A DNA stretch of 64,000 bases from Anaeramoeba ignava BMAN (Eukaryota > Protista > Anaeramoebae), in assembly GCA_028826165.1 (NCBI GenBank), contig JAPDFW010000080.1, positions 1 to 64,000 on the forward strand, in the 5' to 3' direction. Position numbers and translations under genes: made by a program. Positions 1 through 19,900 of the stretch are shown here, in pieces. The notes beneath the pieces are model-generated. The model was not told where the DNA came from. It was given only the letters and a program-made list of their open reading frames with translations, and did no database searches. How positions within the stretch are numbered: the first letter of the stretch is position 1; the number at the start of each line of letters is the position of its first letter.

Positions 1-2240
1 TGATTTATATTTGTTTCCTCTATTAATATCTAATTCTGCGAAATGAGAAATTTGATAATTCCCCCTTGAATTTTCATTTTGGATTCTCTTCACAAATTAA
101 ATGCAATAGACTTTCATTCTTGATTGTTTTTGGCATTAATATCTAATCCTTTTCAACAAGAAATTTGATAATTTCATTGAATTTTCATTTAGATTTCTGC
201 AAATTAAATGCAAAAGCTGTTTCATTATTGTTTGTTTTCATTAGCATCTGCTCCGTTTGAAACAAGAAATTTGATAATTTCAACTGAGTTGAGATTTTGC
301 AAATAAAATGTAATGGAGTTTCATTATTTTCCGTTCTTTTTCATTAACATCAGCTCCATTTTCAACAAGAAACTTAATAATTTCCGCTGAATTTTGTTTC
401 GATTTTACAAGCAAAAATGCAAAGGAGTCATATCACGAGATGTTTTATCATTAATGTTTGCTCCATTTGCAAACAAGAAATTTTGATAATTTTCATATAA
501 ATTTGAGTTTTTACTTTGGCAAATAAAAATGTAATGCTGTTTCATTATAATTTGTTTTATCATTCACATTTGCTCCTTTTTGAAACAAGAAGTTTGATCG
601 ACTCAAATAATTTAGGATTTTCATTTTCATTTTCATTTTCATTTTCATTTTGGAATGGAAACTCTAATTGATTTTGATATTGGCAAACTTATATGTAATG
701 GTGTTTGCTTTTACATGTTTTGCATTAACATCTGCTCCATTTTCAACTCAAGAAATTTTTGATCATCTCGACTTTTGTATTTGAACTTTGACAAACAAAA
801 TGTAATGGTGTTTGGTTATTGTTATGAGATTATATTAACATCTGCTCCGTTTTCAACAAGTAATTTGATAATTTCATTTGAATTTGATTTTTCACTTTGC
901 ACAAACAAAATGTAACGGTGTTTGATTTTGATTTGTTTTTCATTAACATCTAATCCTTGTGAAACAAGAAATTTTGATAATTTCTATTGAATTTGGATTT
1001 GAATTTTGACAAGCAAAATGTAATGGTGTTTCATTATTATTTGTTTTGGCATTAATATTTGCTCCTTTTGAAATGAGAAATTTGATAATTTCATTTGAAT
1101 TTGGATTTGGACTTTGACAAGCAAAATGTAATGGTGTTTCATTGTTATATGTTTTAGCATTGACATCTAATCCTTTTGAAACAAGAAATTTGATAATTTC
1201 AATCGAATTTGGATTTGAACTTTGACAAGCAAAATGTAATGGTGTTTCATTATTATTTGTTTTGGCATTAATATCTAATCCTTTTGAAACGAGAAGCTTG
1301 ATAATTTCTATTGAATTTGGATTTGGACTTTGACAAGCAAAATGTAATGCTGTGCAATTTCTATTTGTTTTATAACTAGAATCTAATCCTTTTTCAATAA
1401 GAAATTTGATAGTTTCAATTGAATTTGGATTTGAACTTTGACAAGCAAAATGTAATGGTGTTTCATTATTATTCGTTTTGGCATTAATATCTGCTCCGTT
1501 TTCAATAAGAAATTTAATAATTTCAAATGATTTTGGATTTGGATTTTGGCAAATTAAATGCAATGGTGTTTCATTTTGATTTGTTTTGGCATTAACATCT
1601 AATCCTTTTGAAACAAGAAATTTGATAATTTCAAATAAATCTGGGTTTTGATTTCGACAAGCAAAATGTAATGGTGTTTCATTATTATTTGTTTTGATTT
1701 TGACATTTTCTCCATTTGAAACAAGAAATTTGATAATTTCAAATGAATTTGGGTTTGGACTTTGACAAGCAAAATGTAATGATGTTTCATCTTCATAAGT
1801 TTTGGCATTAATATCTGCTCCGTTTTCAATAAGAAATTTGATAATTTCAAATGATTTTGGATTTGGACTTTGACAAATTAAATGTAGAATTGTTTCATTA
1901 TTTTGCATTTTGACATTAATATCTGCTCCTTTAGAAACAAAGGAATTTGATAATTTCATCTGAATTTTCACTTTAATTTTCGATTTTGACAAAACAAAAT
2001 GTAATGGTGTTTCATTATGATAAGTTTTGGCATTAATATCTGCTCCATTTGAAACAAGAAATTTGATAATTTCAAATGATTCTGGATTTATATTTTGGCA
2101 AATTAAATGTAATGGTGTTTCATTAAAATTATTGGAAATATTAACATTGATTCCTTTTTGAAATGTGAAATTTAACTGATTCAAATGAATTATGTTGACA
2201 TGCACTTAATAAATCTTGAAATAAAAACTTTTTGATTCAT
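1..2240 (-). CDS. Ankyrin-repeat protein (36-aa repeats); runs off the left window edge, frameshifted at both ends
   Basis: ORF 943-2205 has about 11 repeats of NAKTxxNETPLHFACQSPNPNSIEIIKFLVSKGxDx (TPLH ankyrin motif). The same repeats continue in broken frames over 1-943. The likely true ATG is at 2240 (MNQKVF...), with a frameshift before the ORF. Confidence 0.85.
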
Positions 2241-2706
2241 TTTTAAAGAAAAAAAATGAAATGAAAAAAAAATGAAAAAAAATATTTTTATTTTTATTTT
2301 TATTTTTCCTTTTTATTTAATTCTTATTTTTCCTTTTTTTGCTTTTTTTTTTTTTTATTCTCCTTTTTCTCCTTTTTATTTTGAATTTAAAATTTGAATT
2401 TGGATTTAATTGATAAAAATCTTTTAATTCTTTAAATTCTTCTTTTAATTCTTTTGAATTTCTTTTGTTTTATCAAATTCATCATGATAAAAAGAAATAT
2501 ATTAATTGATTTAATGTTGAAAATGATTTTCTTGAATAATCTTGAACTTGATCAATTGGATCTTTAATATTTAATTGAAACATTGTTTTAAATAATCCAC
2601 TTCTTATTATTAAAAAGAAAAATTAAAAGATCAAATTGATCAAAAAGGCAAATCTTTTTGATCTTTAAAAAAAAAATTTATTTTCTTTCTCAATTTTTGA
2701 TTAAAA

Positions 2707-5700
2707 ATGAAAATGATAATAATTTTAATTCTTTTATTATTGAAAGTTGAAAATCAAACATTTTTAAACAGATGGTTGTATTTCTTGAATTTTCACCAGA
2801 AAATGGATTTGGTTTCTCTCAAATTCAGAAATGCAAATAAACATTTCAATAAGTGAAAAATCAAAGTAAAATTTTTCCAAAAACAAAAACAAAAATAAAT
2901 TCAACAACTTAAAAATAATTTTTGATAAATAAATTGAAAAGAATTAAAACAGGAGCAGGTTTTTCAAATTTGAGTGATTATTCAAATGAAGATTCAAAAA
3001 TTTTTAACTGATTTACTTTTAGGGATTCCAGTTTTTATGCAGATCATTCGATTGTAAATTATTTTAATTAATTTTTGAATTAATTTTTGAATTAATTTTT
3101 GAATTAATTTTTGAATTAATTTTTAGTTTCTTTTGGATTTAAATTCATCTGAAATTATTGTTCCAAATGAAGCAACAAATTATGAAACAAATAATAAAAT
3201 TGGAGTTAAATTTATAAATTTAGAAATGAATCATTTATTTGAATTATTTACTTCTTTAAGGATTTTTGATTCTGAAACAACAAATCAACATCATTCAATT
3301 GAAGTAATTATAAAAAAAATTTTTTTTTATTCCACTTTTTTATTCCACTTTTTTTTATTTTTTTTTAAATTTTTTTTTAAATTTTTTTTTTAAATTTTTT
3401 GATTTTTCTAATTTAATAGTGGACAGGATTTATTCAATACTCAACTTTACCTCTTCTTTTAGATACTATTACTCAACCAAATCCTCCAAATTTCTGTTCA
3501 AAATTTACAGAATTAAATTTTACAATTCAAGACAAAAAACCAAAACAAAATTATGGATTACAAAAAATTAACGTAAATTATATAAATAATGAAGAATGGA
3601 TTTTAGAGATTACTGCAGATATTGATATTTCAGATTCATTTCCAACGGAAAAAAAGATTATCATTAAAAAATTTGAAGTAAATTCAGTAGAATATTCACT
3701 TGAAAATGAAATTAGTATGAATTTTTTGATAAATGGAGAAGCTGAAATAATAGTTCCAATTATGAAGGCAGGCGAGCATGAGAACTTAATTGAATACACA
3801 GAAGGAAATTCACCAGAAGGAGTAGAGACTATTCAACAAGAAATAACAGAAAAAAGAGCCGAAATGATATTTGATTTGCACAAAGAAGGATCATTTAATC
3901 TTGAGATTTTTGACATGAATCTTGGATATTTTCGACCTTTAGAAATTGGAGATCCTGAATCAGTTGAGGAGGTTTATCAAAGCGGAACTTACTGGCTGGG
4001 AAAATTCACAAACAAAACTGATAATGATTCGATAATTTATCTGAGTTTTTCGATCGGAGAATACAGATCAAACAAGAGTTGGTTTTATTACAAAGAACCC
4101 GAAGTCCATGGAGTGAATTGCCCGATGGGATCTTTAAGAAACATGATGTGTCCATTCTGCCAAAATGGACAACTTCATATGTTGGGAGTTGATTTGACAA
4201 CAATTTTTTCTTCTTATAATTTTTCTCTTCAAGATCGAATTGTTGATCAAAATAAATCAATTGATTTTTCAATCGGTTCACAATTCCTCCTCTTTCAATT
4301 TGTCTTCAGAACCGTTTTATCAAGATCAATATGAACATCTCTGTTTTGAATTTTGATGAAATTGTTCCTAATTTTTAAATCAATTCAAAATGATCGATTG
4401 TTTGTTGAAAAATTATGATCTTTATGATTCATGGATCGCAACAATTTATCCAGATGGCGGTTTGTGAACCAGCAGTATTTCAATGATTCACTTGATTCTA
4501 TTGGTGTTTTTAATGGATGTTTTTATTAATCAAAATGATTTTTGTATGCAAGAGCAAGGATCAGGGATTGAAATTTTCAGCTTCATATTTTGTTCATAAT
4601 AATTTTGATAACATCACAGTTAAAAATTGAGAATTTCAACACAAATCTTTGGAATAACAGTGTTGTTCAAAAGGATACGTTTTGGATCAGATAATCAATC
4701 ACTTGTTTTCCAGCCAGAAAAATGTTGGATCGATGTCATTACTCTTTGGTGTGAATTCTTCATTTCTTTCTTTTTGCCTCAAATTTCCAATTTCTCGAAG
4801 GAAAACTTCTCTTTAATAACTGATTCAAACAACTTTAAAAAAGCAACAATTGAGTTTCAAATTGAAAACAATGGCGAAGTTAGTGGGATGATTGTTGGAT
4901 ATTTGAGCTGCAATAATTCGGATTTGGTAATCAATCCTGACAATCCAAAGCAAATGAATATTTCCTCAAATAGTAAATCCAGTTTGGTTTTTGAAGTGGA
5001 TTATGAATCTAGTTTGGATGAAGATGCCAAAATTGAATGTGAATTGGATATAAGTCAAAATTCACTTCCTTTATGGAATATCACTTATGAAAATGAAACA
5101 GTAAACGGACTAATCATTCCTATTTATAATGGATGTTTGTTTCAACGCGCAGATCCCTATTTTCCTGTTGATGGTATTTCAGGAATTCAAGTTGATAATT
5201 TTGACACAAATCAAGAATCAAATGAAAATTCATTTCAACTTAAATTTCTTGTAAAAATCAACAATTCTCCAGTTAGTGCTGTTTTTAGTCTTGATTGCTT
5301 TATCAATTCTTCACTTATTCTCCACGAAACCAATTCAATTAATTTTTCTCAATCTGAAATCCAGAAATATGTTGATTGGATTGTTGTTTTTGAGTCATCT
5401 TTTGAATATCCATTTTCGATTCAATGTGAAATTGAAAGTGAAATTGAAATGGAATCATGTTGGTCAAATAACAGCAAATTTTCCAATTCTTCTTTTGATT
5501 TTCTCTTTCAAATTCAACAAGATCAAAAAGATTCAAGTGGTTTTTGGAATTCGAAGTTGGGATCTTTTCTTTATAAAATGGGGGGAGATTCTAAACTTGG
5601 GGGAGTTTTTTGTTTTATTTTCTTTCTTCTTCTTTTTCTTACTTTGTTGATTTTTGTTCCACTTTTTTTACTTTTTAAATCCAAAAAGAAAAAATTATTT

Positions 5701-5955
5701 CAAAATCAATCAAAAGATTTTGAATTGAAAAAAGTTAAAAATGAAAATTTACAAAAAGAATTTGAAATGGATCAAGTTGTTGAAAATCCTTTAAAGAAAA
5801 AAAGAGAGAAAATGAAAGATTTAGAAAAAAATGCAGATGAATTATTATCTCAAATTGGAATTGAAGAAGAAGAAAAAAAAAGAAATAAAAAAAGTGGATT
5901 AACTTTAAAAGAAAAAATGGAAAGAGATTTTGATTCAATAATAAATCAAAAATAA
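2707..5955 (+). CDS. HAP2: HAP2/GCS1-like (fusexin, class II) membrane fusogen, divergent; frameshifts at about 2770-2850 and 4290-4700
   Basis: Signal-like start MKMIIILILLLL at 2707. Probable introns at ~2866-2952, ~3054-3126 and 3304-3419. HAP2-like segments occur in the expected order: INGEAEIIVPI, EITEKRAEMIFDLHKEGSFN...RPLE, GVNCPMGSLRNMMCPFCQNGQLHMLGVD, and the HAP2-GCS1 signature reconstructed across 1-nt indels at 4491-4586 (DSIGVFNGCFINQNDFCMQEQGSGLKFQL vs IGVxYxAFxxQPxFCxxxxxSCLxNQL). These are followed by Ig-like ATIEFQIENNGEVSGMIVGYLSC, a single TM helix and a Lys-rich tail. Confidence 0.72.
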
Positions 5956-6056
5956 AAAAATTAAGGAAAAAAAAAAGTTCCATTTATTTTTGTGTTTCAA
6001 AAATCAAATTCAATCAAATCAAATGATTCTAAAGAATTTCTAAACCAAAATTTAAT

Positions 6057-9000
6057 TTAAATCAAAATTCCACTTTCTTTCTTTTTTTCATTTTCTTTTG
6101 GTTTTTCATCTGTAGGTTTTTTTTGTGCATTTTTCATTGCACCAAAATTGAGATGGTGTTTTTGTTGAAATTCCACAACTTCTTTTGATTTTAATTCTAA
6201 TTGTTTTTGGAGTGATTCTTTTGTTTTTTCCATCTAATTTTATAAATAATTTTATAAATAATTTTATATATAATTTTATAAATAAATTTATAAATAATTT
6301 TATAAATAATTTTATAAATAATTTTATATTTAATTTTATAAATAATTTTATAAATAATTTTATAAATAATTTTATAATTAATTTTATAATTAATTTTATA
6401 TTTAATTTTATATATAATTTTATAAATAATTTTATAAATAATTTTATAAATAATTTTATAAATAATTTTATATTTAATTTTATAATTAATTTTATATTTA
6501 ATTTTATAAATAATTTTATATATAATTTTATAAATAATTTTATAAATAATTTTATATTTAATTTTATATATAATTTTATATATAATTTTATAATTAATTT
6601 TATAAATAATTTTATATATAATTTTATAAATAATTTTATAAATAATTTTTAAATAATTTTATAAATAATTTTATAAATAATTTTATAAATAATTTTATAT
6701 TTAATTTTATATTTAATTTTATAAATAATTTTATAAATAATTTTATAATTAATTTTATAAATAATTTTATAATTAATTTTTATAATTAATTTTATAATTA
6801 ATTTTATAAATAATTTTATAAATAATTTTTATAAATAATTTTATAAATAATTTTATAAATAATTTTATATTTAATTTTATATTTAATTTTATATTTAATT
6901 TTATAATTAATTTTATATTTAATTTTATAAATAATTTTATATTTAATTTTTATAAATAATTTTATAAATAATTTAATAAATAATTTTATTAATAATTTTA
7001 TAAATAATTTTATATTTAATTTTATAAATAATTTTATTAATAATTTTATATTTAATTTTATAAATAATTTTATAAATAATTTTATAAATAATTTTTATAT
7101 TTAATTTAATAAATAATTTTATAAATAATTTTATATTTAATTTTATCAATAATTTTATATTTAATTTTATATTTAATTTTATAATTAATTTTATATTTAA
7201 TTTTATATATAATTTTTATAAATAATTTTATATTTAATTTTATAAATAATTTTATAAATAGTTTTATAAATAATTTTATATATAATTTTTATAAATAATT
7301 TTATAAATAATTTTTTAAATAATTTTATAAATAATTTTATAAATAATTTTATAAATAATTTTATAATTAATTTTATATTTAATTTTATAAATAATTTTAT
7401 AAATAATTTTATAATTAATTTTATAAATAATTTTATAATTAATTTTATAATTAATTTTATAATTAATTTTATATTTAATTTTATATTTAATTTTATAAAT
7501 AATTTTTATAAATAATTTTATAAATAATTTAATAAATAATTTAATAAATAATTTTATAAATAATTTTATAAATAATTTTATAAATAATTTATAAATAATT
7601 TATAAATAATTTTATATATAATTTTATAAATAATTTTATATATAATTTTATAAATAATTTAATAAATAATTATATAAATAATTTTATAAATAATTTTATA
7701 TTTAATTTTATAAATAATTTTATATATAATTTTATAAATAATTTTATAATTAATTTTATATTTAATTTTTATAAATAATTTTATATATAATTTTTATAAT
7801 TAATTTTATATTTAATTTTATAAATAATTTTATAAATAGTTTTTATAAATAGTTTTATAATTAATTTTATAATTAATTTTATAAATAATTTTATAAATAA
7901 TTTTATAATTAATTTTATAAATAATTTTATAAATAATTTTATAATTAATTTTTATAAATAATTTTATAATTAATTTTATAAATAATTTTATAAATAATTT
8001 TATAATTAATTTTATAAATAATTTTATAAATAATTTTATAATTAATTTTATATTTAATTTTATATTTAATTTTATAAATAATTTTATAAATAATTTTATA
8101 ATTAATTTTATAATTAATTTTATAAATAATTTTTAAATAATTTTATAAATAATTTTATAAATAATTTTATAATTAATTTTATAAATAATTTTATAAATAA
8201 TTTTATAAATAATTTTATAAATAATTTTATTAATAATTTTATAAATAATTTTATAAATAATTTTATAAATAATTTTATATTTAATTTTATAAATAATTTT
8301 ATATTTAATTTTATAAATAATTTTATAAATAATTTTATAAATAATTTTTATATTTAATTTTATAAATAGTTTAATATTTAATTTTATAAATAATTTTATA
8401 ATTAATTTTTATAAATAATTTTATATATAATTTTATAAATAATTTTATATTTAATTTTATAAATAATTTTATATTTAATTTTATAAATAATTTTATAATT
8501 AATTTTATAATTAATTTAATAAATAATTTTATAAATAATTTTATAATTAATTTTATAATTAATTTTATAATTAATTTTATAAATAATTTTATAAATAATT
8601 TTATAAATAATTTTATAAATAATTTTTATATTTAATTTTATAAATAATTTTATAAATAATTTTATAAATAATTTTATAAATAATTTTATAAAATAATTTT
8701 ATAATTAATTTTATATATAATTTTATAAATAATTTTATAAATAATTTTATATTTAATTTTATAAATAATTTTATAAATAATTTTATATTTAATTTTATAA
8801 ATAATTTTATATTTAATTTAATATTTAATTTTATATTTAATTTTATATTTAATTTTATAATTAATTTTATATTTAATTTTTATAAATAATTTTATAAATA
8901 ATTTTATATTTAATTTTATAAATAATTTTATAAATAATTTTATAAATAATTTTATAAATAATTTTATATTTAATTTTATAATTAATTTTATAATTAATTT

Positions 9001-10342
9001 TATAAATAATTTTATAAATAATTTTATATTTAATTTTATAATTAATTTTATAAATAATTTTATAAATAATTTTATATTTAATTTTATATTTAATTTTATA
9101 AATAATTTTTATATTTAATTTTATAAATAAATTTTATAAATAATTTTATATATAATTTTATAAATAATTTTATAATTAATTTTATATTTAATTTTATAAT
9201 TAATTTTATAAATAATTTTATATTTAATTTAATAAATAAATTTTATAATTAATTTTTATAAATAATTTTATAAATAATTTTTATATTTAATTTTATAATT
9301 AATTTTATAAATAATTTTATATTTAATTTTATAAATAATTTTATAAATAATTTTATAAATAATTTTATATTTAATTTTATAAATAATTTTATAAATAATT
9401 TTTATATTTAATTTTATAAATAATTTTATAAATAATTTTATATTTAATTTTATAAATAATTTTATAATTAATTTTATAAATAAATTTTATAAATAATTTT
9501 TATAAATAATTTTATAAATAATTTTATATTTAATTTTATAAATAAATTTTATAAATAATTTTATATATAATTTTATAAATAATTTTTATATTTAATTTTA
9601 TAAATAATTTTATAAATAATTTTATAAATAATTTTATATTTAATTTTATATTTAATTTTATAAATAATTTTATATTTAATTTTATAAATAAATTTTATAA
9701 ATAATTTTATATATAATTTTTATAAATAATTTTATAATTAATTTTATAAATAATTTTATAATTAATTTTATAAATAATTTTATATTTAATTTAATAAATA
9801 AATTTTATAATTAATTTTATAAATAATTTTTATAAATAATTTTATATTTAATTTTATAATTAATTTTATAAATAATTTTATATTTAATTTTATAAATAAT
9901 TTTATAAATAATTTTATAAATAATTTTATATTTAATTTTTATAAATAATTTTATAATTAATTTTATAATTAATTTTATAAATAATTTTATAAATAATTTT
10001 ATAAATAATTTTATAATTAATTTTATAAATAATTTTATAAATAATTTTATAAATAATTTTATAATTAATTTAATAAATAATTGTGTTTTGTAATTTGTAA
10101 TTTACATCAGCTAATTCTTTTTCAAGAATTGGAAGAACATCTCCTACTGTTTGTTCAACTAAAACATCATCAATTAATCGAAAACACTTTCTTGCTTTAT
10201 CAAGTGGAGTTAATGCTTTTACAACAACTTCATGTTCTCTTTTTTGTATTTCAGTATCATTAAAAAGATTAATTAAATTATCTTTTTCTTGAACAAGTTG
10301 ATTAAAATGTGTTGTAATTGCATTTTGTATTTGAGTTTGCAT
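6057..10342 (-). CDS. PFDN2: Prefoldin subunit 2 (beta-type); two exons, 10342-10106 and 6233-6057
   Basis: Exon 1 has EHEVVVKALTPLDKARKCFRLIDDVLVEQTVGDVLPIL, a PFDN2 signature. GT donor at 10105, AG acceptor at 6235-6234. Exon 2 continues in frame (MEKTKESLQKQLELKSKEVVEFQQKHHL...ESGILI*). Confidence 0.92.
6236..10078. repeat. ~3.85-kb 12-nt minisatellite (ATAAATAATTTT and variants) filling the prefoldin-2 intron
   Basis: Directly visible tandem array, almost free of G and C. Confidence 0.97.
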
Positions 10343-10509
10343 TTTAATTTAAATTAGAAAAGAAAAAAATGAAAAAAAAAAACTATAAAAAAATTTTCAT
10401 TTTTTCTTTTTTTTTTAATTTCATTTTTTTTTTCTCTTTTTTTTCTAATTTTTTTTTCCTCTTTTTTCCTTTATTTTTTTTTTATTGTAATTTAAAAATA
10501 ATTTAAAAA

Positions 10510-12588
10510 ATGGATTTGAATGCTCAATTTACAAAAAGAAAAACAGGTTTTAAAAAGAAAATTAATTTTGGTTACAGAAAAGATAAAAGAATGAAAATTG
10601 GACAAGAATTGAGCAAAAAAAAAAAAGAAAAACGATTAATGCAAAAAAGAAATTTAAAACTAAAATCAAAAGAAGATAACGTACATTTATTTTTAAAACA
10701 AAAACAATTAAAAATTTAACTAAAAATTTTAATTAATTTTTTTATTATTTATTAAGTCAATGGAATCTTTAATTCTTGATAGATTAAATGAAATTAATAT
10801 CAATGATATTCAATCAAATTTTCCTTTTTTAATTGATTCAAGAGATTCAATAAATTCTAAATGGTTTGAATCTTTATTTTCATTAGAAAATCCTGTTGAA
10901 ATGCTTGTTAATAGCTTTGAAAATGGTGATCAAATTCAACAAGTAAATTAAAAATTAAAATTTATTTATAAAATTAAAATTAAAATAAAAATTAAAATTA
11001 AAATTAAAATCAAAATCAAAATTAAAATTAAAATTAAAATTTAAAATTAAAATTAAAATAGCTTCAAGCAGGTTTAATTATTTCAATCGGAACTGGAAAA
11101 TATTTAAATAATGAAAATCAAATTGAAAATCAAAATCAAAATCAAAATCAAAATCAAATTCAAAATCAAACAAAATTTATTAACTCTTTAGAAGAAACTC
11201 AAATTTGTGCAGTTTCTATAAATCAATTAAACAATTCAGATGAAATGATTCAACAATCAGTATTTTTAAATGAATTATTTTATATTTATTTTTTTTTTGG
11301 ATTAATTATTATAAAATAATTCATTTTGAATAAAAAAAAATATTAAAGGCTATTACAATTCTTGGTAATCTTGCTCAAGAAAAAATCACTTTTAGAGATC
11401 AAATTATTGAACTTGGGTTTATTGAAGCAATAAAAAATATGGAATCTGCTCGAATTGAATTAGCACATGAATGTATTTGGGCTCTTTCTAGATGTTTTAT
11501 AAACAAAACTTATAATTTTCAAAATATTTCAAATGTAGAAATTGTTTTTTATTTTAAAATTAAAATCAAATTTAAATTTAAATTTAATTTTAATTTTAAA
11601 ATTATTTTTTATTAGTTACAATCAGTTATTTCCTTATTTTGTGGAAGTCTTTTATATGATGATACTCAAATTATCCAAGATTCAGCAATGGCTCTTGTTT
11701 ATTTATCTGATACTTCAGAAACAATACAATTTATTTTGAATGAAAATATTCTGAATAGACTTTTTGAATTGATAATGTAAAAAAATCTAATATTTATTTT
11801 TTCATTTTAATCAATAATTATTTTTTCTTATTTCTTATTTTTTTCTTTATTAGACATCCAGATTCAGAAATTCAAATTCCAATTTTAAGATTATTAGCAA
11901 ATATTTCAGTTGGTGAACAAGATCAAATACAAACTCTTATAAATATAAACATTCATGAAATTCTTGTTCAATTATTAGAAAATAATTTACAACAAATTCG
12001 GTAAAAAAAAAAAAAAAAATTTTTACTTTTAGGGAAAATTTTTTTATTAAAAAACAAAAACAAATTTTATAGGCAAATTTCTTGTTGTATTTTAGCAAAT
12101 ATTGTTGGAATTAATAGTGAAATTGTAGATTTTTTATTTCAATCAAATGCATTTGATTTTATTTATCAAATTATAGAAAAAGATGATCCACATGTTCAAA
12201 TTGAAGCAATTCCAATTGTGATTAATTCAATTTTGACAGGAACAAATGACCAAGTTTTGTAAGTTATTAATTGTCAAAAAAAAACAAAAACAAAAACAAA
12301 AACAAATGAAATTTATATTTTTTATTTTTTATTAGAAAAATTGCAAATAAAATCATTTTTGATTTCTTTGAAATTATTTTTTCAATTAAAGATTCTGGAA
12401 TTGCTTTAAATTTATTGTTTGCTTTAGAAAAAATTTTTGAAATTGATCCAAATAATATTTTATTATCAAAACCTCATTTTATTGATTTTTTAAATAATTT
12501 CTTGGAATTTAATGATATTGAAGTTGCTCGAAAAATTAGAGAATTAAAAATGAATTTTGTTGAGAAAAATATGAATCTTGAAAAATGA
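10510..12588 (+). CDS. Importin-alpha (karyopherin alpha), divergent; about 8 exons
   Basis: IBB-like N-terminus (RKTGFKKKINF...RKDKRMKIGQELSKKKKEKRLMQKRNL). ARM segments AITILGNLAQE..FRDQIIELG, DSAMALVYLSD and IQIPILRLLANISVGEQDQIQTLI. Stop TGA at 12586-12588. Confidence 0.8.
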
Positions 12589-12723
12589 ATAAAAAAAAAT
12601 AAAAGGATTTTCCTTTTAAATTTAAATTATTTTTTTTGTTTTTTTTATTTAATTTGTAAATGTCAAATTTATGTTTTTTTTCATTTTTTTTTCATTTTTT
12701 TTTTTTCATTTTTTTTTTCAAAA

Positions 12724-15700
12724 ATGGATCCAAAAATACAATCAAAAGTTGCTCATAAATGGGTTATTGAAAAGAAAATTGGAGCAGGATCTTTTGGAAT
12801 TATTTATCAAGCAAGAAATATATTTACACATGAACAAGTTGCAATAAAATTTGTAAAAAAAAAATTAAAAAAAAAAATTTTATAAAAATATCTTTTTTAA
12901 AAAAACTTAAATATAAATTCTTTCAAATATTTATATAGGAAAATATTAATACAAAACATCCACAATTAATATATGAAAGTAAAATATATCGTATTCTTTC
13001 TGGAGGAGTTGGGATTCCGTCTGTGAAATGGGTTGGAATTGATACAAGATATAATGTTATGGTTATGGATTTATTAGGTCCAAGTTTGGAAGATTTACTT
13101 AATTTTTGTTCTAGAAGATTTTCTCTTAAAACTGTTTTAATGATTGCAGATCAATTAGTAATATTTTTTTTTACAAATTTATAAATATGAATATAAATAT
13201 GAATATAAATATGAATATAAATATAAATATAAATATAAATATAAATATAAATATAAATATAAATCTGAATATAAATCTAAATATAAATCTAAATATAAAT
13301 ATAAATATAAATATAAATATAAATATAAATATAAATACAAATATAAATATAAATATAAATATTAATATAAATATAAATATAAATATAAATATAAATATAA
13401 ATATAATTAATATAAATATAAATCTAAATCTAAATATAAATATAAATATAAATATAAATATAAATAATATAAATATAAATACAAATATAAATATAAATAT
13501 AAATATAAATATAAATATAAATATAAATATAAATATAATTATAAATTATAAATATAAATATAAATATAAATATAAATATAAATATAAACATAAAATAAAC
13601 ATAAATATAACATAAATATAAATATAAATATAAAATATAAACATAAAATAAAATATAAACATAAAATATAAAAATAAAATAAAAACATAAAATATAAACA
13701 TAAATATAAATATAAATATAAATATAAATATAAATATAAATATAAACATAAAATAAAAATAAACATAAATATAAAAACATAAACATAAAATATAAACATA
13801 AATATAAAATATAAATATAAAATATAAAATATAACATAAATATAAATATAAATATAAATATAAATATAAATATAAATATAAATATAAATATAAATATAAA
13901 TATAAATATAAATATAAATATAAATATAAATATAAATTTAATTATAATTATAAATATAAATATAAATATAAATATAAATATAAACATAAATATAAATATT
14001 TGAAAATATAAACATAATTATAAATATAAATATAAAATATAAACATAAATATAAACATAAATATAAATATAAATATAAATATAAATATAAATATAAATAT
14101 AAATATAAATATAAATATAAATATAAATATAAATATAAATATAAATATAAATATAAATATAAATATAAATATAAATATAAATATAAATATAAATATAAAT
14201 ATAAATATAAATCTAAATATAAATATAAATATAAATATAAATATAAATATAAATATAATTATAAATATAAATATAAATATAAATATAAATATAAATATAA
14301 ATATAATTATAATTATAAATATAAATATAAATATAAATATAAATATAAATATAATTATAATTATAATTATAAATATAATTATAAATATAAATCTAAATAT
14401 AATTTAAATTCAAATCAAATTTAAAATTTAAAGCTTTGCAGAATTGAATATATTCACTCAAGAAGTTTTATTCATCGAGATATTAAACCTGAAAATTTTT
14501 TAATGGGAACTGGTAAAAAAGGAAATCAAATTAGTGTTATTGATTTTGGTTTAGCAAAGAAATTTAGAGATGCAAGAACTCATCAACATATTATATATAG
14601 AGATAATAAAAAATTAACAGGAACAGCAAGATATGCATCAGTTAATACACATTTAGGAATTGGTAAAATATAAATTCAAAATCAAAATCAAAATTAAAAT
14701 TAAAATTGAAATTAAAATTGAAATTAAAAATTGATTAATTTTTAGAACAAAGTCGAAGAGATGATTTAGAAAGTGTTGGATATGTTCTACTTTATCTTCT
14801 TCGTGGAAATTTACCTTGGCAAGGTCTTCCAGCAGGAAATCAAAAAGAAAAATATGATAGAATAATTGAAAAGAAAATATCAACAACAATAGAAGAATTA
14901 TGTGAAGGATATCCAGGTATTTTTCTTTAAAAATAGAAATGAAAGAAATTTTATAAAATAATATTTTAATTTATTTTTTAGTTGAATTTTCAACTTATTT
15001 AAAATATACAAGAGATTTAAATTTTAATGAATCACCTGATTATTCTTATTTAAGAAGCCTTTTTAGAGATCTTTTTATTCGTGAAGGATATGTTTATGAT
15101 TATTTTTATGATTGGACAATACAAGCAAAAGTAGATATTCTTTTATAAATTTTATATTAAATTTTATATTAAATTTTATATTAAATTTTATATTAAATAT
15201 TATATTAAATTTTATTATAAATTTTATATTAAATTTTATATTAAATATTATATTAAATTTTATATTAAATTTTATTTTAAATATTATTATAAATTTTATT
15301 ATAAATTATTATAAATTTTATTTTAAATATTACATTAAATATTATATTAAATTTTATATTAAATATTATATTAAATTTTATTTTAAATTTTATATTAAAT
15401 ATTATATTAAATTTTATATTAAATTTTATATTAAATTTTATTTTAAATTTTATTATAAATTTTATATTAAATATTATATTAAATTTTATATTAAATTTTA
15501 TTATAAATTTTATTATAAATTATTATAAATTTTATTTTAAATATTACATTAAATATTATATTAAATTTTATATTAAATATTATATTAAATTTTATATTAA
15601 ATTTTATATTAAATTTTATTTTAAATTTTATATTAAATTTTACATTAAATATTATATTAAATTTTATTATAAATTTTATTTTTAAATTTTATATTAAATA

Positions 15701-16687
15701 TTATATTAAATTTTATATTAAATTTTATTATAAATTATTATAAATTTTATTTTAAATATTATATTAAGTTTTATATTAAATATTATATTATATTTTATAT
15801 TAAATTTTATTTTAAATATTATATTAAATTTTATATTAAATATTATATTAAATTTTATTTTAAATTTTATATTAAATTTAATATTAAATTTTATATTAAA
15901 TTTTATATTAAATTTTATTATAAATTTTATATTAAATTTTATATTAAATTTTATTTTAAATTTTATATTAAATTTTATTTTAAATTTTATTATAAATTTT
16001 ATTATAAATATTATATTAAATTTTATATTAAATTTTATATTAAATTTTATTTTAAATTTTATATTAAATTTTATATTAAATTTTATTTTAAATTTTATTA
16101 TAAATTTTATATTAAATTCTTTAAAGATGGAAGAATCAAATTTAATCGAAAATATTATTAGAGATGATAACCAAAATGAAAATGAAAATGAAAATGAAAA
16201 TAGAGAAATTCAACAAGAAAAAGTTCGAAAAAGAATTACAAAACCAAATGTAAAACAATTTCTCGAAGAAAATTCACGAATTCGAGAAATACAAATTGAG
16301 AAGAAAAGAAATGCAAACAAAGCTTTATTTACAAATCATTTCCATGATTTAATTGATACTTTTGAATTTGATAATTTTGATAATCAAAAAATTTCAAATA
16401 CTTTTTTTTCAGCTTTTAATAACCCAAAAATTGAAATGGCAATTAATTCTAATTTAGAAAAAGAAAATAATCAATTAATTACACCTTCAAATGATCCAAA
16501 AAATTGGAATCAAGAAAAAATTCAAATTCAACCTTTTCAAAGATTTCCCAGAATTTCAATTGATTTTAAACCATCTAATATTGAAAAAAATACACAAAAA
16601 GAATATTTTATTGTAAATCAAGATGAAAAAAAGAAATCTAATGTATCTCGATATTTATCTCTTCCAAATCTTAAGAGTAAAATATAA
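12724..16687 (+). CDS. CK1: Casein kinase 1 (CK1 family); 6 exons
   Basis: [84 protein letters not shown]. Large introns at 13158-14433 and 15131-16126. Confidence 0.96.
13180..14400. repeat. (ATATAA)n microsatellite in CK1 intron 2
   Basis: Visible hexamer array with ATAAAC and ATCTAA variants. Confidence 0.95.
15140..16115. repeat. 12-nt minisatellite (TTTTATATTAAA) in the last CK1 intron
   Basis: Visible tandem array. Confidence 0.95.
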
Positions 16688-16992
16688 TTAATTAATTTTT
16701 TATTAAATTTTTTATTAATTATTAAATTTTTTAATTTTTTAGTTTCAAGAAAATAGGCTTTTAAATTATTTAGTTTCCATTTTTTTATCTTCCATTTTAT
16801 TTAAAAAAGAAAAAACAGAAAAAGTTTTAATTGTTTGTTCACAATTTTTTATTATTATTTTTAATTTAGTTTCAATTATTTTTGATTTTACTTTTGAAAA
16901 GAATTTGGAACAAAAAAAAATAAAAAATAAAAAAATAAAAATCATTTTTTTCCTTTTTCTTTTCTTTTAAATAAAAAAAATATAAAAAAAAA

Positions 16993-19900
16993 ATGAAATT
17001 TGAATTTTCAATTTCATTAAAATATTTTTTAATTTTAATAATAATTTTAAAATTTATAAACTCTTCGCATACAATTAATTTTGATGATGAAATTTATACC
17101 CAATATTCACCTTTTGCAGCTTTTAGAATTTTAGATAAAACAAGTATTTTTGGAACAACTTCACCTTTTAAACCTTCTTCGGGTCAACTTTATCTTGTAG
17201 AAACTGAAGCAGATCTTACAAAACTTTTAAATGATAATCCAAGTCATACACTTGTTGTGGTTATTGATACCGCTGTTTATAACAAGTAAATTTATTTTAT
17301 ATTTATTTACAAATTTTATTTTACATTTATAAACAAAATCTATTTTACATTTGTAAACAAATTTATTTACAATTTATAATTAAAATATTAAAATAAATAT
17401 TAAAATAAATATTAAAATAAATATTGAAATAAATATTGAAATAAATATTAAAATAAAAATTAAAATAAATATTAAAATAAATATTAAATTAAATATTAAA
17501 ATAAATATTAAAATATTAAAATAAATATTAAATTAAAATTAAATTAAAAATTAAATATTAATATAAATATTAAAATAAATATTAAAAATAAATATTAAAA
17601 TAAATATTAAATTTAATATTAAAATAAATATTAAAATAAAATTAAAATAAATATTAAAATAAATATTAAAATAAAATAAATATTAAAATTAAATATTAAA
17701 ATAAATATTAAAATAAATATTAAAATAAATGAAATAAATATTAAAATAAATATTAAAATAAATATTAAAATAAATATTAAATAAATATTAAAAATAAATA
17801 TTAAAATAAATATTAAAAATAAATATTAAATTAAATATTAAAATAAATATTAAAATAAATATTAAATTAAATATTAAAATAAATATTAAAAATAAATATT
17901 AAAATAAAATATTAAAATCAAAATATTAAAATAAATATTATTAAAATAAATATTAAAATAAATATTAAAATAAATATTAAAATAAATATTAAAATAAATA
18001 TTAAAATAAATATTAAAATAAATATTAAAATAAATATTAAATAAAATAAATATTAAAATAAAATATTAAAAATTAAAAATATTAAAATAAATATTAAAAA
18101 ATAAATAAATATTAAAATAAATATTTAAAATTAAAATATTAAAATAAATATTAAAAATAAATATTAAAATAAATATTAAATTAAATATTAAAATAAATAA
18201 AAAAAATATTAAAATTAAATATTAAAATAAAATTAAATATAAAATAAAATATTAAAATAAATATTAAAATAAATATTTAAAATTAAATATTAAAATAAAA
18301 TTATAAATATTAAAAATATTAAAAAAAATTAAAATAAAAATATTAAAATTCAAAAAAATATTTAAAAAATATAAAAAATATTAAAATAAATTAAATATTA
18401 AAATAAATATTAAATTAAATATTAAATTAAATATTAAAAATAAATATTAAAATAAATATTAAAATAAATATTAAAATAAATATTAAAATAAATATTAAAT
18501 AAAAAATAAATATTAAAATAAATAAAAAATTAAAAATTAAAATTAAATATTAAAAAATAAATATAAAAAAATAAAAATTAAATTAAAAATTAAATATTAA
18601 AATAAATATTAAAAATAAATATTAAAATTAAATATTAAAATAAATATTAAAATATTAAAATAAATATTAAAATAAATAAAATTAAAAAAATATTAAAATT
18701 AAATAAATATTAAAATAAATATTAAAATAAATATTTAAATAAATATTAAAATATATAAAATAAATAAAATAAATATTAAAATATTGAAATAAATATTAAA
18801 ATAAATATTAAATTAAATATTAAATTAAATATTAAATTAAATATTAAACTAAATATTAAAATAAATATTAAAATAAATATTAAAATAAATATTAAAATAA
18901 ATATTAAAATAAATATTAAAATAAATATTCATAAAAATATTAAAATATTAAAATCAAAATAAATATTAAAATATTAAAGAGATAATCTCGAAAAATTGGT
19001 GGATAAATTAAAACTGGCAGGAATAATCGTAATCGGGGGAACAATACCAGCAACAGGATTTTCACCAGAGAAGGTGTATCCCGATCGAGAAGCAGACATG
19101 TGCCTTCACCCCAACAGCGACTACATTTGGAATCCATATGGAACATCACTTTTATACGAACGATTCTACATTCCAATAGTATATTTACTATTAGAAACAG
19201 AAAGCGAGAAAATGCGCGAACTGGCAAGAGCCAACGTAGAATCAGACAAGTATCCGAAGAACGGAGCTGATTTCCAGATGTTTATGGAAGCCTCAATTGA
19301 CTCGAAAGTGTGTCTTCGAAGAGAAACATGCGATCCAATTGGCGGTGAAAGCGTATGGGGTTTTCTTGGTGGGGTACAGAACCAGTCAAGACCGTACATA
19401 TTACTTCAAACATCATTAGATTCTCGCTCTTTTTTCCCAGGGTTCTCGCCAGGTGGTGACTTCCCTTCATCGGGAATAGTTACCCTCATAGCCGCCTTAG
19501 ACGCTCTCCTCAAATTCGCTGCAAATGACACTGACGCCTTTTACCAATCGCTCCAGCGAGATATAATGTTTGCGTTTTGGGAGAGCGAGAGTTTCGGAAA
19601 AGTGGGTTCCAGAAAGTTCATTTCTGACGTGCTGTCGTTTACTTGCGACCAATGGACAAATGAATGGAAAACTCAATGTGATGATCCAAAACGATCCTCA
19701 ATGGCGTTCAAGTCGGTAAACCTCAGCAATATCGCTTTCATCGTCGAACTCGGACAGACAGGTCTCTACGACAACATATCTAATTATGCCTTCAAATCAA
19801 ATGGCTATCTCCACTACGAGTACGACAACCCAGAAAATGTTCCACTTTCTGATTCTTTTATAAATTTAACGGATTTTTCCAATTCTCAAGGTCTCAACAT

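Follow-up and report, generated by a model that had tools for sequence, protein, structure and literature searches.

The segment 2707-5955 on the plus strand of contig C81 of Anaeramoeba ignava BMAN was analysed within a 64,000 nt stretch of DNA (the window), whose numbering is used throughout. It is probably one copy of a single gene of four exons that is present twice in the assembly and that encodes a very divergent member of the HAP2/GCS1 (fusexin) family; the frameshifts that break it in the window would be assembly errors, and its product would likely have a surface role in membrane fusion or gamete interaction. HAP2 is, to our knowledge, the sole gamete fusogen widely conserved across eukaryotes, and it serves as a marker of sexual capacity in protists in which sex was not observed. 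The gene described here is a new, very divergent member of this known family and the third HAP2-like gene of A. ignava, after the canonical gene found on contig C137 and a divergent one on contig C98. Sequence comparison supports a type I membrane protein as the product of the locus, with homology to HAP2/GCS1 over the signature region and domain III.

The window is AT-rich in the extreme (GC content of 0-28% per 2 kb) and its introns are short, composed only of A and T, and delimited by GT..AG. On the plus strand of 2707-5955, an ATG opens a hydrophobic N-terminus; among the several open pieces are a 304-codon frame (3420-4331) and a 442-codon open reading frame (ORF; 4627-5955), and the strand also encodes a 24-residue hydrophobic helix and a Lys-rich tail. 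The original prediction described a HAP2-like gene hidden in an ORF track that shows fragments. The frames are indeed broken in the window sequence: they shift repeatedly between ~4287 and 4767, and also in exons 1 and 2. The A. ignava genome, searched in six frames, contains one other copy of the gene, on contig C134, with 99% protein identity. The features of the locus, with the C134 copy mapped to the window, are the following (all on the plus strand):

2707-2865 (+), exon 1: start codon, signal-peptide-like hydrophobic N-terminus (~2707-2754) and first residues of the ectodomain; the C134 copy is open from the ATG to the GTAAAA donor.
2941-3053 (+), exon 2: phase-2 acceptor after ...gaaaag and GTAAAT donor, with splice sites and frame continuity taken from the C134 copy.
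3127-3303 (+), exon 3: 59 codons, phase 0 at both ends, placed by its open frame and GT..AG boundaries.
3420-5955 (+), exon 4: remaining ectodomain, transmembrane helix, cytoplasmic tail and TAA stop codon; 2533 nt plus the stop in the window.
4110-4190 (+), cysteine motif C-P-x-G-S-x-R-N-x-x-C-P-x-C followed by a conserved His, as aligned by phmmer to proteins P0001-P0003.
4287-4767 (+), indel zone: 11 indel differences from the C134 copy in pairwise alignment; the frame is broken in the window.
4455-4575 (+), HAP2/GCS1 signature-like segment, frameshifted twice in the window; its intact reading comes from the C134 copy.
4813-5142 (+), domain III-like beta sandwich with an N-x-G motif and two conserved cysteines.
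5143-5598 (+), extra membrane-proximal region with a second domain III-like cysteine pattern and a weak BLASTP similarity to the C98 protein; AlphaFold2 (AF2) predicted local distance difference test (pLDDT) below 50.
5605-5676 (+), single transmembrane helix of 24 hydrophobic residues, read from the translation.
5677-5952 (+), Lys-rich charged cytoplasmic tail, read from the translation.

The introns on either side of exon 3 (3054-3126 and 3304-3419) contain only A and T. All junctions of the four-exon model are GT..AG with consistent phases, giving a product of ~995 residues; the model and its splice sites are inferred from the DNA sequence. As read from the translations, the product has an N-terminal signal peptide, a large ectodomain and one C-terminal helix, which is the topology of a type I membrane protein. 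Among the listed public sequencing runs that contain the stretch, none is on record as RNA. One run of unspecified kind (X5) has three short, low-depth contigs on the exon that were not counted as evidence of expression. The gene appears to be unannotated because neither of two large protein searches brought up a model of its own product, in a collection that includes the annotated A. ignava HAP2. In this respect the gene was hidden, as originally proposed.

Homology to HAP2 was found by an exhaustive phmmer search of 1.84 billion protein representatives with the 467-amino acid (aa) frame of the C134 copy. At E <= 1e-3 it returned three proteins: P0001 from the Logan assembly SRR15116022, P0002 from Andalucia godoyi and P0003 from the dictyostelid Synstelium polycarpum (E of 7e-9, 2e-7 and 2.8e-4, respectively). 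All three are HAP2-domain proteins. They score 69.4, 68.6 and 32.7 bits with the Pfam HAP2-GCS1 profile (PF10699), above its gathering score of 27.4 bits, and their segments aligned to the gene, scored alone, still reach 33.4, 33.6 and 23.7 bits over profile positions 157-304. The phmmer alignments pair the C-P-x-G-S-x-R-N-x-x-C-P-x-C motif and then the SIGV...FC...GSGL segment of the gene with the HAP2 signature of the relatives; via P0001 the signature-like segment corresponds to positions ~255-294 of the Pfam profile. Columns C234, S238 and R240 of the cysteine motif are invariant in the alignment with the homologs (alignment A1). Against the canonical HAP2 of A. ignava (P0004), the best local BLASTP match falls exactly on the signature (E 0.004). 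Alignment by hhalign of the single sequence to a profile of five HAP2 proteins, the canonical A. ignava one included, covers 168 columns (E 4.3e-13, probability 97.9%), and a second match to this profile, by the domain III piece (E 5.5e-5), follows the domain II match in colinear order. When the HAP2 modules of P0001 and P0003 were in turn searched against the A. ignava genome, both had the gene as best match (1.1e-11 and 7.9e-9), P0001 ranking it above the C98 gene. Homology with HAP2-domain proteins was thereby found over the signature (domain II) region, and the likeness to the HAP2 signature that had been noted by eye is beyond chance.

Several observations weigh against or limit the assignment of the gene to the family. 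The Pfam check proposed with the original prediction gave no direct detection: at the reporting threshold of E <= 10, HAP2-GCS1 has no match in the window pieces or in the two intact C134 frames (467 aa and 421 aa), and a six-frame genome scan with the profile misses the locus while finding the C137 and C98 genes. Family membership is consequently based on transitive and profile evidence, and the five-protein hhalign profile is dominated by the three divergent relatives. The conserved cysteine pattern of the family (C-x2-[IL]G[VI]...F-C...G-x-C-L plus CCxC) is incomplete: the first and third signature cysteines are replaced by Leu and Gly, as also occurs in P0003, the middle one being kept, and the canonical CCxC motif is absent, with C...C-P-x-C in its place. 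Finally, the AF2 model of the domain I/II frame, built from a six-sequence alignment, has a mean pLDDT of 35.6, too low for use in fold search.

Another view is that the HAP2 likeness is an effect of chance or of the composition of an AT-rich genome, and that the gene encodes an unrelated, lineage-specific membrane protein. The lack of a direct Pfam match fits this view, as do the marginal BLASTP values to the two paralogs (E 0.004 for C137 and 0.015-0.38 for C98) and the language-model atlas, which yields no usable match for the gene (nor for P0003). We consider it very improbable. The best phmmer match was obtained library-wide with bias 0.0 and the relatives come from compositionally different organisms; each of the three proteins retrieved has a Pfam match inside the segment aligned to the gene; two separate regions are colinear in hhalign; and the reverse search brings back the gene as best match. 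Other searches were negative. A sequence search of the PDB gave nothing at E <= 10. A word-indexed protein search with the 467-aa frame or with alignment A1, limited to targets of 0.55-1.75 times the query length, gave nothing either, and the same kind of search with an exon of canonical HAP2 retrieved only P0004 itself. The window pieces produced only noise in tblastn against the C137 and C98 loci.

The likenesses that had been proposed upstream from the signature fared unequally. GEAEIIVPI and EITEKRAEMIFDL lie outside every significant alignment and are unsupported. NGQLHMLGV is inside the aligned region, but its counterpart there is the AHCLRF segment of HAP2, which precedes by about nine residues the partner that had been named for it. 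The proposed downstream likeness to domain III is borne out more weakly than that of the signature, by the hhalign match and by fold search. In the AF2 model of the C-terminal ectodomain piece, residues 19-96 form a confidently predicted seven-strand sandwich (pLDDT 72-84), while the membrane-proximal region yields no fold. Foldseek comparison of the domain III model with 350,542 PDB chains gave domain 3 of Plasmodium berghei HAP2 as best match (7lr3_D, 1.1e-4; 7lr4_C, 3.8e-4). Archaeal Fsx1 ranks 26th, and the HAP2 matches do not stand out from generic sandwiches. In alignment A4, which includes canonical HAP2, one N, one G and two C are invariant. Together, hhalign, alignment A4, AF2 and Foldseek place an Ig-like domain III with a conserved disulfide after domain II. 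The predicted fold is consistent with domain III without being discriminating.

Alignment of the window and C134 copies over 3.4 kb revealed six substitutions and many indels. Three of the indel differences are in exon 1 (2766, 2784, 2815-2816) and two in exon 2 (2996, 3032). All 11 indel events of exon 4 fall within 4287-4767 and most are differences in homopolymer length. On C134, one 467-codon frame runs from the start of exon 4 through the signature to ~window position 4810, and a 421-codon frame overlaps its end and continues to the stop codon. The pieces from which the signature was originally composed (SIGVFNGCFY followed by a stop, INQNDFCMQEQGSG and LKFSAS) are present in the window, each in a different frame. 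Joining them into the composite that had been presented needs three hand-picked shifts, and its 'FNGCF' and final 'QL' arise because the shift points were picked by eye; the read-supported single frame of C134 reads SIGVLMDVFINQNDFCMQEQGSGLKFSAS.

The two versions were compared with public reads by aligning Logan contigs of four public runs, a type of assembly that loses minor variants, to positions 2650-6000. At the ten listed indel sites (4286-4718), the covering contigs of runs X1, X2 and X3 (X3 not at 4564) all carry the C134 state, and no read contig of these runs has the window state. The claim that the gene is truly split by frameshifts is unsupported at all ten of these sites. Positions 3409-5849, which count 2441 letters in the window, are covered by 2446 letters, with 17 gap letters, in two long contigs (X1 record 8 and X2 record 16). 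The listed indels explain 13 gap letters (net +1); the remaining four letters (net +4) would fit the single difference left between the two copies, near 4767, where C134 has +6. With the net gain of 5 letters between 3409 and 5849, the length of exon 4 becomes divisible by three (2538 nt, 846 codons, by this arithmetic). Near 4767, where the frame changes, the two C134 frames are both open. Alignment A1 independently supports an intact frame: beyond 4718, the 467-codon frame still aligns with homologs. In exon 1, X2 read contig 9 also agrees in length and in gap count with the C134 version. By length arithmetic, the ORF would then be intact. The C134 state, which preserves the frame, is the one carried by the organism's DNA as represented in the read contigs at the ten listed sites, where frameshifts or stops expected for a pseudogene were not found.

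The location of the segment provides a context for the frameshifts. Window positions 1-18973 are the reverse complement of C134:234-21245, so that the two contigs, C81 and C134, overlap at their ends. The assembly was produced from Nanopore R9.4/9.5 reads with ABruijn, Racon, Nanopolish and two rounds of Pilon (PMC11550330). Residual indels at a redundant contig end are consistent with this history. The frameshifts are most likely assembly artefacts, the real gene being intact, and they would correspond to uncorrected Nanopore consensus errors in the terminal 19 kb of C81.

The window copy might instead be a pseudogene in the course of decay (an allele, or a duplicate of recent origin) that exists beside a functional or near-functional C134 copy, its indels being genuine mutations. 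The reads do contain alleles of both C81 and C134 at single-nucleotide polymorphisms (SNPs): of four SNPs, two (3688 and 5527) show the window base in the X1 contig and the C134 base in X2, which points to two sequence versions in the culture. The crowding of 11 indel events into 480 nt, with none in the flanking 2 kb of the exon, is odd for random consensus error, and the C134 copy is itself frame-breaking, with a length of +6 near 4767 compared to the +4 deduced from the reads. The interpretation preferred here also has its own weak points, as the 4-letter frame-restoring insertion near 4767 is deduced from lengths and gap counts, and the loss of minor variants in the contigs leaves room for a rarer frameshifted allele. 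We nevertheless regard a pseudogene as unlikely. The X1 contig follows the window at 2/4 SNPs but at 0/10 listed indels, which argues that the indels are not real alleles. The exon has six substitutions against 11 indel events, the reverse of the excess of substitutions over indels that real decay would yield, most of these indels are homopolymer length changes typical of Nanopore consensus, and the copy is found in an unmerged overlap of contig ends.

The predicted protein was compared to the other HAP2-like proteins of A. ignava. The canonical one (P0004, 'protein hapless 2 [Anaeramoeba ignava]', contig C137) is 761 aa long and reaches 441 bits with the Pfam profile; in the genome scan its exons score 181 + 181 + 41 bits. 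It has in common with the gene the type I topology, the aligned signature segment and a domain III that is equally distant and shows the N-x-G and two-cysteine pattern in both. The identity between the two is ~19% in the core aligned by hhalign, and the gene differs from canonical HAP2 by the absence of a Pfam match, by loss of the first and third signature cysteines, and by its extra membrane-proximal region. The CCxC...AHCLR fusion-loop region of canonical HAP2, opposite which hhalign sets the C-P-x-G-S-x-R-N-x-x-C-P-x-C motif, is replaced in the gene by this much shorter motif. The divergent C98 gene is a 1186-aa ORF that scores 66.9 bits with Pfam HAP2-GCS1. Its product resembles the one of the gene in having an extra domain next to the membrane, and there are weak similarities in domains III/IV (BLASTP E 0.015 and 0.086) and in the signature; the match at E 0.015 is between the membrane-proximal region of the gene and the fourth domain of the C98 protein (residues 749-791). 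Unlike the gene, C98 passes the Pfam threshold and retains the signature cysteines, and BLASTP detects no similarity between the two in domains I and II. The first exon of canonical HAP2 at the C137 locus is followed by a long repeat of (ATT/CTT) type, translated as (LI)n (L013:3905-5079, minus strand); this presumed intron gives rise to a spurious 284-codon ORF.

Outside A. ignava, the gene's sole significant sequence relatives are P0001 (a Logan ORF of 3872 aa), P0002 (ANDGO_02890 of Andalucia godoyi, 3314 aa) and P0003 (gene15259 of Synstelium polycarpum, 2110 aa). Like it, they have the C-P-x-G-S-x-R-N motif and the signature segment, and their domain III also contains P-L-W and N-G motifs. 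P0003 has also lost the same two signature cysteines. All three reach the Pfam cut-off, unlike the gene, and are two to four times longer, the gene corresponding to one module. P0002 matches the query at three separate sites in phmmer, which suggests that it has repeated HAP2-like modules, and P0003 has additional Arm-like and laminin-G-like matches. P0001 is encoded by one unbroken 11.6-kb ORF (L023:354-11972) with a C-terminal transmembrane segment. We know of no described fusexin built like the giant P0001 and P0002 with their HAP2-like modules. The gene probably belongs to a divergent branch together with these giant proteins of the jakobid A. godoyi, of a dictyostelid and of the Logan assembly.

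The dictyostelid relative draws attention to HgrB (DDB_G0281923) of Dictyostelium discoideum, a distant HAP2 homolog with similarity only in the motif region, which has a signal peptide and a C-terminal transmembrane segment and is found alongside the canonical HAP2, HgrA (PMC4910948). Knockout showed HgrB to be indispensable for gamete fusion and not interchangeable with HgrA; its own role was left unresolved, and it was reported as restricted to dictyostelids (PMC4910948). HgrB, compared here by description only, resembles the gene in its coexistence with a canonical HAP2 and differs from it in that its function was defined by knockout, while the gene is known from sequence alone. We raise as a tentative idea, with the odds against it, that the gene, the giant Andalucia protein, the Logan ORF and the dictyostelid protein (possibly of the HgrB lineage) form an ancient second family of HAP2 paralogs. 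This family would date from near the last eukaryotic common ancestor, span Metamonada, Discoba and Amoebozoa, act with canonical HAP2 in gamete fusion, and have been missed by lying at or below the limit of Pfam detection.

The product of the gene is predicted to be a type I membrane protein of ~995 residues with a signal peptide, a large ectodomain, one transmembrane helix and a charged tail. Its ectodomain would keep the domain II core around the signature, followed ~115 residues further by the domain III beta sandwich and then by the extra membrane-proximal region. Considering homology and topology, the protein would be located at the cell surface and act most likely in membrane fusion or gamete interaction, either as a second fusogen or as an accessory to canonical HAP2, as HgrB is to HgrA in Dictyostelium. 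A HAP2 descendant that no longer fuses membranes, and that retains the signature core and Ig-like domains as a surface adhesion or recognition protein or as an accessory subunit, is a less probable but serious possibility. Such a change of function would be in line with the loss of two signature cysteines and of the CCxC motif, with the much shorter segment opposite the canonical fusion-loop region, and with a sequence below Pfam detection. The giant relatives are unlike known fusogens, HAP2-like modules being repeated in one and Arm-like and laminin-G-like matches present in another, and HgrB, HAP2-like only in its motif, is required for gamete fusion and cannot replace HgrA (PMC4910948). On the other hand, domain order and membrane topology are those of a fusexin, and the preservation of the motif region across Metamonada, Discoba and Amoebozoa argues for a constrained function tied to that motif.

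The surroundings of the gene were also inspected. Upstream, the minus strand at 943-2205 carries a 420-codon ORF composed of ~12 ankyrin-like repeats of 33 residues (NNNETPLHFACQ...IEIIKFL); in the syntenic region of C134, internal repeat offsets have ~80% identity. Downstream, 12-nt units (aattttataaat and variants) are repeated in a long tandem array that extends from 6226 to beyond 8000, with a GC content that decreases from 3% to 0.1%; the low GC persists to ~10000. The array is found on C134 as well, in another register and with a different length. Over the whole overlap, C81 and C134 are 85-95% identical with many indels, and the genes of this 19-kb stretch are present twice in the assembly with different error loads.

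The locus serves as a warning that clustered frameshifts at redundant Nanopore contig ends in the A. ignava assembly can mask intact genes. For the biology of A. ignava itself, the gene had been put forward as evidence for cryptic sex; it adds little in this respect because a canonical HAP2 with a Pfam score of 441 bits is already annotated in the organism, and the case for sex rests better on that gene. Of the three HAP2-like genes of A. ignava, this one escapes both annotation and the standard Pfam model, so divergent paralogs may be undercounted in HAP2 censuses. Should the link to HgrB be true, an accessory gamete-fusion protein considered dictyostelid-specific would be ancient and widespread.

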